A stretch of DNA of 64,000 nucleotides from positions 124,001 to 188,000 of IMG/VR virus record IMGVR_UViG_3300035156_000206; one strand, written 5' to 3'. Made by a program: the position numbers and the translations under genes. The notes under the pieces were generated by a model, which worked only from the letters and a program-made list of their open reading frames with translations, ran no database searches and had not been told where the DNA came from. Positions 41,841 through 44,055 of this stretch are shown here, piece after piece (position 1 is the first letter of the stretch; the number at the start of each line of letters is the position of its first letter).

Positions 41841-41874
41841 AGCCCTCTTCGGAGGGCTTTTTTATTGTCTGGTG
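41841..41874 (+). terminator. Terminator; left copy of a 33/34-bp direct repeat
   Basis: agccctc-TTCG-gagggc-T6-attgtctggtg. Confidence 0.85.
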
Positions 41875-41960
41875 GATCCGCTCCGAACAACAGGGCATTC
41901 CAAATCTTACCACAAAAATAACACCCGCGCATAAATATCCACAAATATAAGGAGAACAAT

Positions 41961-42179
41961 ATGGAATTCAGTCGCTGGGCAGAACAAGTTATATCTGGGG
42001 CACTAGATACGGAGGGACACTTTTTTCCTCTGGATTCGCTCCAACAAACGCTAACACGTGATGCTGGAACAGGAAATGTAACAAAAATCGTTGCTACCAA
42101 TGGGACCAACACGTGGACACAAACCATGACGTACACTAGTGGCTTGCTGACAAATATTTCTGGATGGGTAAAAGTGTGA
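41961..42179 (+). CDS. Small virion-associated hypothetical protein
   Basis: CATAAATA late promoter; AAGGAG RBS; YD-like [11 protein letters not shown] end. Confidence 0.65.
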
Positions 42180-43234
42180 ATATTTCTCAACATCTAATTG
42201 CAGCCGCTGCTGTAGCTGGGAACGCCGGTCCTGGTGGCACAGGTGCTACGGGTCCTGCTGGACCGACTGGGCCCACTGGTCCTGCTGGACCGACTGGGCC
42301 CACTGGTCCTGCTGGACCAACCGGAACTACTGGACTGACAGGGCCCACAGGCCCTACGGGATCGACTGGACCTGCGGGTGCTACCGGGGCTACTGGGGCT
42401 ACTGGACCTGCAGGAGCAGCAGCGCCTGCCGCTAAGTACGTACCACTGATCTCACAGTACGACCGCGCTCTGATCTTACCATTTGTTCGGCAGGCAAATG
42501 CCGTTAAGGGTTTTAGCCGTAACATCAATGATGCACAGTATGTGGGTCCAGTCACGGATGCAGAAATCTACGGAACAGAAGCAGGTGCACTGTCAGTTGG
42601 ACAAGCAACCACAAAAGCACTTGCCTTCTATTGGGCAAAGATGAGCTGGGACTTAGCCAATGGTGAATCACTATTGATCCAGGCAAGATTTAAGACTATT
42701 AGTGCAACAACCAGTGCCAACAACATATTTGGTAACTCTGATGGTACCATTGAAGGTTTAGGTCTCGTATTGTACGGACCAACCCATGCTACGACGCCAG
42801 GTAGGCTATTGCTTAACTTCAAGACTATTGGAGTAGGAGCACAAGCCATTCAACTGCAGCCAGCTGTAGTAGTTGGTGGAACAGTTACACAAACGGTCGT
42901 TCCAACAGACGTATACCAGAATATCACTATTCACGTTGACGGAGCTACACGCAAGCTCGATGCATGGGTAAACTGTCAGGAAGGGCTAAATGCAGGATAT
43001 GTTCTGCCTGCTGGTAGTACAATTCCAACAGTAAAGCGCAATTTTGGGCTTGGGTACTTTCCACCAGATGACAGCTTCGTAGCAACTACTGCCAAAGCGG
43101 CCCGCTTTCAAGCTTTCCGCATGGCAGTATTGCCTGCTGGCTTGCGTTTTATTAATCCAGGTCTGCTGGATATGCAATTCAACATCAACCCATACCGCTT
43201 CTTTACTGACAGCGATTACGTAGGAGCAGTATAA
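42164..43234 (+). CDS. Collagen-repeat fibre with C-terminal lectin/LamG-like beta domain (start may be GTG at 42176)
   Basis: About 20 Gly-X-Y triplets followed by a beta-rich domain. Confidence 0.7.
42251..42318 (+). repeat. 27-bp tandem repeat (2.5 copies) in the collagen region
   Basis: ggtcctgctggaccgactgggcccact repeated exactly. Confidence 0.9.
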
Positions 43235-44019
43235 TGACACAACGTAAAGTTGCTTTGATTATTGGCTACGGTCAATCTAATGAGCGTGGCACGGGAGTGG
43301 CACCTCGACTTGCCGGTACAGCAGTTCTTAGTTCTGATACAGCAAACAACGTTCGCCATACGGCCGTCTTTGGACAAGCAAATGTCAGCTTGACCACAAC
43401 TGCACCTTATGTTGAACCTTGTTCGATTTTTCAGAAGGTGGGTGAACACCTGGCTATGGAAACAGGATGGGTAGTGAACGTGGTGAACAAAGCTGTTGGT
43501 GGAACTGCTGCTACAGATTCTTGGTGCGGATGGGATTCAACCAACAACCGCATCAAAACGTCGGGCGAGTCAGGATACGATCCTTCAGGTCTGATTGCTG
43601 CGTTTGTTGCTGCAATTACTAGTGCTGTTGCACAAGGGTATGAAGTTTGGACCATTACCGCAGGACACCAACAAGACATTACTCTAGGTCGCCCAGTGGA
43701 TCAAGTTATTGCTGCATCAGTATACATTCAACAATTAGCAATTGCTGCTGGTGCTACTAAGGTGTTTGTTGGTAAGACCCCACGTTACATTGGTGGCGCT
43801 ACTGAAGCTGAATGGAATACAGGCGGAAAGATCCATCTGATCGCAGCGGGTGTACTCGCAGGTATCCCAGGATCATACGCAGGAGCTGATTTGTCAACCA
43901 ACACTGACACCAAACTGTGCGCAACTGATAACATCCAGTACATTCACTTGAACCACGCTGGAGTTTGTTGGGCAGCAGAGAAGTGGCTGATTGCGATGAA
44001 ACCTGTTTTTAGTGCTTAA
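43234..44019 (+). CDS. SGNH/sialate O-acetylesterase-like hydrolase
   Basis: GYGQSN block I, AVGGT block II, D..xIHLN block V. Confidence 0.65.
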   Translation: MTQRKVALIIGYGQSNERGTGVAPRLAGTAVLSSDTANNVRHTAVFGQANVSLTTTAPYVEPCSIFQKVGEHLAMETGWVVNVVNKAVGGTAATDSWCGWDSTNNRIKTSGESGYDPSGLIAAFVAAITSAVAQGYEVWTITAGHQQDITLGRPVDQVIAASVYIQQLAIAAGATKVFVGKTPRYIGGATEAEWNTGGKIHLIAAGVLAGIPGSYAGADLSTNTDTKLCATDNIQYIHLNHAGVCWAAEKWLIAMKPVFSA

Positions 44020-44022
44020 ACG

Positions 44023-44055
44023 AGCCCTCTTCGGAGGGCTTTTTATTGTCTGGTG
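44023..44055 (+). terminator. Terminator; right copy of the direct repeat
   Basis: agccctc-TTCG-gagggc-T5-attgtctggtg. Confidence 0.85.

Follow-up and report, generated by a model that had tools for sequence, protein, structure and literature searches.

Positions 41841-44055 of the DNA analysed here are explained best, and with moderate confidence, as a self-contained late unit of a promoter motif, three coupled genes and a terminator, located directly behind the capsid gene of a 292-kb jumbo phage with a T4-like capsid. The unit would combine a mobile lectin/esterase core, likely forming a head or neck fibre, with a copied terminator. The window, i.e. the whole stretch of 64,000 nucleotides under study, corresponds to bases 124001-188000 of the IMG/VR phage record IMGVR_UViG_3300035156_000206 (291,967 bp, estimated 84% complete), and translations followed genetic code table 11 throughout. 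The explanation draws on three kinds of element that are already known, namely the moron, the shuffling by promoter-early stem-loops (PeSLs) and the SGNH receptor enzymes of phages. New are the module itself, which is undescribed, and the reading of the two terminators as native and copied.

Duplication of the capsid gene terminator

The unit is bounded by two direct repeats on the plus strand. Copy 1 (AGCCCTCTTCGGAGGGC-T6-ATTGTCTGGTG, 41841..41874, 34 bp) begins 25 nt past the stop codon of the capsid gene; copy 2 (AGCCCTCTTCGGAGGGC-T5-ATTGTCTGGTG, 44023..44055, 33 bp) begins 3 nt past the stop codon of the esterase gene and ends the cassette. Both form GC-rich hairpins with a UUCG loop (-16.6 kcal/mol for copy 1 and -14.4 kcal/mol for copy 2) followed by a T-run, and both are putative terminators. 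A preliminary description of this DNA had reported near-identical direct repeats of 33/34 bp at 41841 and 44023, on which the sequence and independent contigs agree: the copies are identical at 33 of 34 positions, including loop, stem and an 11-nt non-hairpin tail, and the identity breaks off sharply at both sides. The extension of the identity by 11 bp past the terminator, said to distinguish this pair from the other terminators of the window, was also confirmed, the tail (≤3 mismatches) recurring at one additional place only within the window. Nor is the repeat common at terminators genome-wide. Its 22-nt core (≤3 mismatches) was found twice in the window, versus 0 in 100 shuffles, and exactly twice in the whole genome of 291,967 bp. 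In a self-comparison of the genome the pair appeared as a 34-bp direct repeat of 97% identity with 2,149 bp between the copies, next to just one further terminator-like repeated pair.

Contigs (Logan) of the source run, a biocrust, cross each copy with 0 differences and at equal depth (11.6 and 12.0); such contigs conceal rare variants. Owing to the T6/T5 difference the two copies share no 31-mer, and the contigs were presumably assembled at k=31. The contig break at 42280-42289 lies inside the collagen repeat and is an assembly effect.

The origin of the pair was resolved by comparison with relatives, 80 of which came from the viral collection (capsid identity 59-88%) and further ones from metagenomes. 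All relatives possess a strong hairpin after the capsid gene; the stems vary freely, and an upstream A-run is usual. Past the T-run of this capsid terminator, the tail is present with all 11 nt (ATTGTCTGGTG) in L055, with 9 nt (ATTGTCTGG) in L038 and with 7 nt (ATTGTCT) in L048 and L102, and four others start with ATTGC. In the window, the hairpin of copy 1 spans 41837-41862 with an upstream A-run, and its tail region covers 41863-41874. Copy 2 starts exactly at the stem, without the A-run. Since the same tail follows capsid terminators with different stems in the relatives, copy 1 is native and copy 2 is its derived duplicate; the presence of A-run and tail in the orthologous place equally identifies copy 1 as the resident capsid terminator.

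The tail ATTGTCTGG(TG) is kept at a capsid identity of only 60-82% and despite differing stems (L055, L038, L048, L102, L050, L035 and L062), and in several relatives it abuts the late-promoter motif of the next gene. This conserved tail might belong to the terminator itself, mark a processing site or act as an element upstream of the promoter.

Promoter motif and the three genes

Between the repeats, a late promoter, a 72-aa open reading frame (ORF), a collagen plus lectin-like protein and an SGNH-like protein had been listed, and motif, homologs, Pfam and folds agree with this inventory. The late-promoter-like motif CATAAATA (41930..41937, plus strand) has a T4-type core and is located 23 nt before the ATG of orf72, with an AAGGAG ribosome-binding site in between. 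YATAAATA occurs 9 times in the window versus 2.15 expected (about four-fold). Genome-wide, 25 of 33 sites lie 5-70 nt ahead of an ORF start, the usual spacing being 16-34 nt ahead of an ATG with ribosome-binding site. By motif and position, CATAAATA at 41930 is a probable active late promoter.

The first gene, orf72 (41961..42179, plus strand), encodes a small conserved protein of 72 aa that precedes fibre- or spike-like genes. With homologs of 52-68% identity it is a real gene. In L099 (57%) and L090 (42%) a homolog is encoded immediately ahead of the lectin/esterase pair; in L092 and L095, phages of 279 kb and 112 kb, respectively, homologs precede other large late genes. The product may be an adaptor or an assembly factor. 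All three cassette genes overlap stop to start, through GTGA (or an ATG 13 nt earlier) and then TAATG. The idea of a programmed frameshift that would fuse orf72 with the collagen protein was discarded because the homologs in L090, L095 and L099 are separate, overlapping genes. The 279-kb phage encodes two tandem orf72 paralogs of 74 and 105 aa (L092, 8001-8613) behind a TTCG-loop terminator and CATAAATA and ahead of proteins of 269, 669 and 752 aa, which is the arrangement of the window with a different payload.

The second gene (42164..43234, plus strand) encodes a collagen-stalked lectin-like protein of 356 aa from the ATG or 352 aa from the GTG at 42176, which overlaps the orf72 stop codon. 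It consists of an N-terminus of about 23 residues, 21 uninterrupted G-X-Y triplets (residues 24-86, nt 42233-42421) and a ConA/LamG-like jelly roll (residues ~92-356, nt 42437-43231). The triplets match Pfam Collagen (PF01391) with 30.7 bits at a cut-off of 27.2, and such a stalk would imply a trimeric fibre. PHROG matches cover the collagen region only and point to tail-fibre families; outside this region the protein has no Pfam or PHROGs match. The C-terminal domain was modelled by AlphaFold2 with a predicted local distance difference test score (pLDDT) above 90. Its fold matches in Foldseek (VIA-align Z 13-18, 165-209 aligned residues) are ConA-like carbohydrate-binding domains, CBM40, pentraxins and parts of phage tailspikes, and its matches in BFVD carry the names ConA-like or LamG. 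The top PDB entries are the lectin-like subdomain in binding regions of clostridial neurotoxins (7-13% identity), which reflects a generic shared fold and no toxin relation. The domain is a putative sugar-binding one.

The third gene (43234..44019, plus strand) is preceded by AGGAG 8 nt upstream, and its ATG overlaps the stop codon of the lectin gene (TAATG). It encodes an SGNH-fold protein of 261 aa, a putative carbohydrate O-acetylesterase. Its AlphaFold2 model (pLDDT 81) matched 1zmb, SIAE and NanS best in Foldseek (probability 1.00), and VIA-align over residues 1-261 yielded Z 15-18, with 18.1 to 1vjg and 2apj and 17.7 to 1zmb. The fold matches are acetylxylan, sialate and peptidoglycan O-acetylesterases and, among phage proteins, G7C gp63.1, the N4 tail esterase part and the Pan3 tailspike. 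Q14, S15, G89, G90, H145, Q146, D148 and H238 are invariant across 28 homologs, in which the GYGQS15NE motif near the N-terminus is invariant or nearly so. This motif resembles the GQSN motif of CE6/SASA enzymes, and S15 is a candidate for the serine nucleophile of block I. The invariant G89-G90 and H238 are candidates for the block II Gly and the block V His, and the block III region reads G-H-Q-Q-D, without Asn. Fold and conserved residues suggest a de-O-acetylation activity. Sequence searches with the family were uninformative: no consistent match emerged when the 28 homologs were scanned against Pfam with E up to 10, one homolog touching SASA at E=0.1, hhalign against the SASA-domain protein from L084 gave a probability of 0.2, and two peptide patterns found no relative in 185,579 species genomes. 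A profile search against PDB sequences returned chance matches to ornithine transcarbamoylase only.

A lectin/esterase module shared by unrelated phages

The proposed mobility of the cassette holds for its core, since the pair of lectin domain and esterase is shared with at least 12 other unrelated phages at 49-82% amino-acid identity. Besides the window's own copy, 29 homologs of the esterase (42-82% identity) and 25 of the lectin domain (49-75%) were found, and the two genes are adjacent and coupled in 12 of 12 other loci examined. Neither protein matches any of 50,697 GenBank phage records. The repeat-bounded 2.2 kb, which the preliminary description took as the swappable unit, is not what has moved: only 42434-43990 shows DNA homology (65-70%) with other phages, leaving orf72, the collagen region and both repeats outside, and no flanking repeats were found around the module in seven other loci. 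The GC content of the module tracks that of the resident genome, from 0.43 to 0.64, in carrier phages whose genomes range from 39% to 66% GC.

Seven of the 13 contexts, the window among them, lie inside head or neck clusters, and five capsid-protein families are represented. In the window (gp23 type) the module comes right behind the capsid gene, in L084 (lambda E type) right behind the capsid gene with the terminator of that gene, and in L089 (HK97 type) behind the capsid gene and two small ORFs. It is located between portal and scaffold in L087 (P22-like), after the portal in L097 (SU10-like), between portal and capsid gene in L098 (PF05065 capsid) and between the coat gene and a gp10-like gene in L182 (P22-like). 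In L085, L086 and L180 the module ends a late or tail operon, in L088 and L090 the context is unclear, and in L099 it stands alone among leftward early genes.

The N-termini ahead of the conserved YxPxISQY start of the lectin domain are hypervariable and comprise 15 to ~170 residues, with collagen in the window copy only. In L099, the closest counterpart with all three genes (57%, 75% and 74% identity), the N-terminus is similarly short and has no stalk, hence the collagen run of the window looks like an insertion into the linker. All five copies with a short N-terminus (window, L099, L090, L086 and L088) have a small ORF directly upstream, an orf72 homolog in three of them, and the copies with a long N-terminus mostly lack such an ORF. 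This association suggests that orf72 gives in trans what the extension gives in cis.

The variable island behind the capsid gene

The insertion site is itself variable. The major capsid gene (40490..41815, plus strand; T4 gp23 type, Pfam Gp23 E=2e-91, PHROG major head protein) is preceded by the genes for the portal (36588-38159) and the prohead protease (38302-38955), both assigned by PHROGs, and by a scaffold-like gene (39475-40455). In relatives it is directly followed by p104, a conserved gene for 104 aa, which in the window is located at 48770-49084 (plus strand) behind the motif TATAAATA (48731-48738, plus strand) and ahead of the head-tail adaptor gene (49926-52556). Among the 41 relatives with both a capsid gene and a p104 homolog, the gap between the two measures 90-251 bp in 18 and 0.5-5.0 kb in 23; that of the window, 6,955 bp, is the largest.

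The cassette had been considered accessory, and indeed it is absent from the 80 viral-collection relatives and from L102, the one informative closer metagenome relative and the only metagenome locus covered by this screen. It is thus far from universally conserved. Empty sites, for which a comparison of relatives had been proposed, exist insofar as capsid gene and p104 are adjacent in 18 of 41; these sites, however, lack the whole 6.9-kb island and not just the cassette. The cassette hence lies between genes that are neighbours in 18 of 41 relatives, but is nested within a 6.9-kb variable island as its first (left) part.

Directly behind the cassette lies p162 (PHROG 5845; 44053..44541, plus strand), which has no late-promoter motif ahead. 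The rest of the island (44504..48730) is of mixed strands. Its leftward genes encode DUF4419, orf103, radical-SAM and proteins of 55, 112 and 204 aa on the minus strand, and a two-way terminator (48634-48653) is located at its right end. None of the cassette genes, p162, DUF4419 or radical-SAM was found near the capsid gene in the 80 viral-collection relatives. L102 (81% capsid identity) has the capsid terminator and then at once homologs of window 47346-48113, and L004 (82% capsid identity) has the 204-aa gene too. This gene and its right-hand neighbourhood are all that the window's island shares with L004 and L102, which makes the right end the older part. By these sequence comparisons, the 5.5 kb on the left, comprising the cassette, p162 and the leftward DUF4419/radical-SAM block, are lineage-specific. 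Where head genes meet neck genes there is thus a hyperplastic region, of which the cassette forms one layer. In a near-identity DNA search of the locus against GenBank phages, only a 213-bp match in the capsid gene was obtained (75%, Stenotrophomonas jumbo phages CM1 and RAS14).

The inserts of the relatives consist of unrelated genes, often for proteins of ~550 aa that bear DUF4379/CapR zinc fingers. The place right behind the capsid gene is in many relatives taken by a gene for a protein of 250-730 aa with N-terminal DUF4379/CapR treble-clef zinc fingers (L004, 6376-8031; L006, 11404-13146; L024, 11520-13715; also L021, L075 and L039). A Mom-like C-terminus is present in L024, which has the fingers too, and in L013, where no finger match was found. 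These zinc-finger and Mom-like genes might be mobile, or serve DNA modification, and have a preference for this site.

Within the window, the leftward block 44504-46787 (minus strand; DUF4419, a 103-aa ORF and radical-SAM), situated amid the structural genes, has a sigma-70-like promoter at 46846-46818 and was missing from every relative checked. A 180-aa ORF at 48071-48613 (plus strand) matches, with its residues 58-137, the central part of a large terminase subunit family (PHROG 5989, E=8e-10) and might be a fragment of a terminase or a small paralog. A 143-aa protein very rich in K, D and E is encoded at 38987-39418, with internal DNA repeats, in the interval from the prohead protease to the scaffold-like gene.

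Proposed function and alternative explanations

In the explanation favoured here, the lectin/esterase module has spread horizontally among unrelated phages, at times together with an orf72-like gene, and each recipient supplies its own N-terminal anchor, in this phage a short N-terminus with a collagen stalk and with orf72 in front. The product would be an accessory virion fibre, likelier of the head or neck than of the tail; in 7 of 13 contexts the position of the genes speaks for the head or neck as the place of attachment. The fibre would bind host surface polysaccharide and the partner esterase would remove O-acetyl groups, with reversible primary adhesion or receptor modification as the outcome. 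The repeats were not carried in by the module. Copy 2 would rather have been made at the installation of the unit, or later by gene conversion, and would give the new operon a proven terminator. As a side effect, the 33-bp homology would be usable by T4-type recombination to excise 2,182 bp precisely, which would leave the capsid gene, one terminator and then p162; such excision may actually take place.

If this is true, the unit is an example of accessory virion genes entering the most conserved part of a large phage genome with capsid expression undisturbed: by copying of the resident terminator the new unit is transcriptionally insulated, and the copy also offers homology for clean loss. 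The protein pair, which is usually encoded beside head genes and has no Pfam or PHROG family for either conserved domain, would represent a widespread, unstudied route for phages to hold and modify acetylated surface polysaccharides, with relevance to host-range prediction and to the design of glycan-targeting phage parts. A wider and rather doubtful generalization would be that the orf72-like adaptor, the lectin protein and the SGNH esterase constitute an undescribed plug-in kit for adhesion or receptor modification on heads or necks, across at least five capsid-protein families. The kit would be anchored by a swapped N-terminal extension or, where this is short, by orf72 in trans, and installed by terminator-duplicating recombination, as a late-gene counterpart of PeSLs in the structural block.

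Several results weigh against the favoured explanation. None of the 55 relatives with at least 1.5 kb downstream of the capsid gene has a second copy of the capsid terminator, which makes the duplication a single event and not a habit of the clade. The exact repeat sequence had 0 matches in the viral contig collection and 0 in metagenome contigs, and flanking repeats of ≥17 bp around the module were found in none of 7 other loci. As only this genome duplicates the terminator and only this module copy has repeats, repeat-mediated swapping is no general habit of the lineage or the module. The search for deletion junctions proposed in the preliminary description was run on contigs and no junction was seen: a precise deletion of the cassette is present in none of the genomes and contigs, and the source-run contigs show no joint, deletion or loose end at the repeats. 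The GC content of the cassette (0.472) equals that of the genome (0.484) and gives no sign of recent arrival. Given the modules at the ends of tail or late operons (L085, L086 and L180) and the stand-alone L099, attachment to the head is no more than probable. The 261-aa protein stays below any Pfam threshold for SGNH, SASA or Lipase_GDSL and has no PHROG family, and Ser15 and His238 are candidate catalytic residues by their conservation. A complex prediction for lectin domain and esterase (score 0.01) gave no verdict and counts neither way.

Alternatively, the lectin protein and the esterase could be soluble late enzymes that are freed at lysis and strip O-acetyl groups from host polysaccharide or debris, acting against the trapping of progeny (receptor destroying) or altering surviving cells in a NanS-p-like manner. 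The esterase is indeed a separate protein of 261 aa, unfused to the fibre, the three genes of L099 stand alone among non-structural genes, and free phage-borne sialate O-acetylesterases are known (PMC10462455). We nevertheless consider soluble enzymes unlikely, because hypervariable N-termini before a conserved domain are the pattern of virion-anchored receptor-binding proteins, a collagen stalk would make the fibre a trimer, head or neck assembly clusters hold seven of the 13 contexts, and SGNH and ConA-like parts are structural in solved phage tails (9vyh, 9lc0 and 4qnl).

The SGNH-fold protein might also serve as an assembly chaperone for the upstream fibre and not as an active enzyme. Strict adjacency to the lectin domain, translational coupling and co-transfer would suit this role, and pairs of fibre tip and chaperone are a known exchange unit in phages. 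Ser15 in GYGQSNE, G89-G90, H145-Q146-x-D148 and His238 are, however, invariant in 28 homologs down to 42% identity, and the predicted SGNH fold is complete (Z 15-18), which argues for retained catalysis and renders a pure chaperone distinctly improbable. As for the repeats, their likeness could stem from convergence of strong terminators or from a chimeric assembly, given that capsid genes of the clade are commonly followed by GC-rich TTCG-loop hairpins and that the genome is a metagenome assembly. Against the freely varying stems of the relatives, an identity of 33/34 that includes the 11-nt non-hairpin tail leaves hardly any room for convergence, and a chimera is just as implausible for copies that share no 31-mer and whose junctions are each crossed by independent contigs with 0 differences and equal depth.

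Comparison with known systems

PeSLs of T4-type phages (Arbiol et al. 2010, PMC2839356; Comeau et al. 2014, PMC4122927) are the closest parallel for the arrangement. In these phages, recombination between flanking stem-loop cassettes leads to the loss of ORFs and to mini-circles, and a homology below 50 bp is enough (PMC2839356). As with PeSLs, the phage has a capsid of the gp23 type, accessory genes in a hyperplastic region are bracketed by direct-oriented stem-loop terminators, and the unit has its own expression signals and leaves neighbouring genes undisturbed. PeSL recombination deletes or inserts the flanked ORFs and gives mini-circles; the repeats described here provide comparable homology, but no mini-circle or deletion was seen in contigs. 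In contrast to a genome-wide family, only two copies exist. The PeSL repeat holds a strong sigma-70-like early promoter, whereas the 33-bp repeat holds none, and the only promoter-like site of the cassette is the late-type CATAAATA, 55 nt outside the repeat. The site is also surrounded by structural genes, a location that is reportedly uncommon for PeSLs. Outside the window, the genome contains at least 10 copies of a 48-bp repeat in a cluster of ~15 kb (1336-16479 of the genome), with TTGACA-N17-TATAAT on the opposite strand. These are consensus early-promoter cassettes resembling the PeSL families of T4-type phages, 100 kb from the cassette.

Morons, a concept reportedly due to Juhala and Hendrix, are a second parallel. 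They are usually single genes of deviating composition that are active in lysogens. The cassette may resemble them by its own promoter and terminator, both present as sequence motifs, by its location between genes that are adjacent in 18 of 41 relatives, by its dispensability for the core life cycle and by the stand-alone three-gene unit of L099. Unlike a moron, it is a late operon of three genes with genome-typical GC content, nested in a larger island of a lytic-looking jumbo phage. Conserved flanking sequence is not a moron feature either (PMC2839356). In its logic the cassette resembles a PeSL cassette or a moron, yet it departs from what defines each of them, with a repeat that contains no promoter, only two copies and an ordinary composition.

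SGNH-domain receptor-binding proteins are also listed for the phages Possum, Aristophanes and Moo19/B2. The window's esterase shares the SGNH fold (Z 13.5-15.5) with such receptor proteins, i.e. G7C gp63.1 (4qnl), the N4-like 9lc0 and the Pan3 tailspike (9vyh); a ConA-like domain is present in these assemblies too (9vyh_q, Z 14.8; N4-like LIT1 and KPP21 proteins), and polysaccharide deacetylation on adsorption is proposed in both cases. However, lectin and esterase are here two small separate proteins and not one large tail fibre, sequence relation was found neither with Pfam, PHROGs and a PDB profile search nor in 50,697 GenBank phage records, and the module genes are mostly located in head or neck clusters instead of tail-fibre clusters.

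Collagen-like and fibre-like decorations of capsids have been proposed to serve surface attachment and carbohydrate-mediated adhesion (PMC7602432), and the hoc gene is associated with PeSLs (PMC2839356). Like the head decorations T4 Hoc, SPP1 gp12 and phi29 gp8.5, the lectin-like protein would be a dispensable late protein encoded beside the capsid gene, and SPP1 gp12 is a precedent for a collagen-like trimeric spike. Differences are that no homology to these decorations was found, that none of them has a partner esterase and that capsid binding is in the present case a prediction from gene position.

Further collagen proteins and occurrence in other samples

The genome encodes four more collagen-repeat proteins. 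Two paralogs of 367 and 395 aa (24325-25428, plus strand, and 106076-107263, minus strand) have 432 bp in common at 85%; each lies behind its own YATAAATA motif, and their C-terminal domains differ. The two large ones comprise 1,124 and 1,299 aa (genome 228080-231454 and window 62978 onward, respectively). A second biocrust run, at low depth, contained identical or near-identical 151-bp contigs of the capsid gene (window 41215-41745) and of p162 (window 44188-44338), and pieces of the capsid gene were present in a riverine metagenome as well, so that this phage, or one very closely related to it, also occurs outside the source sample.

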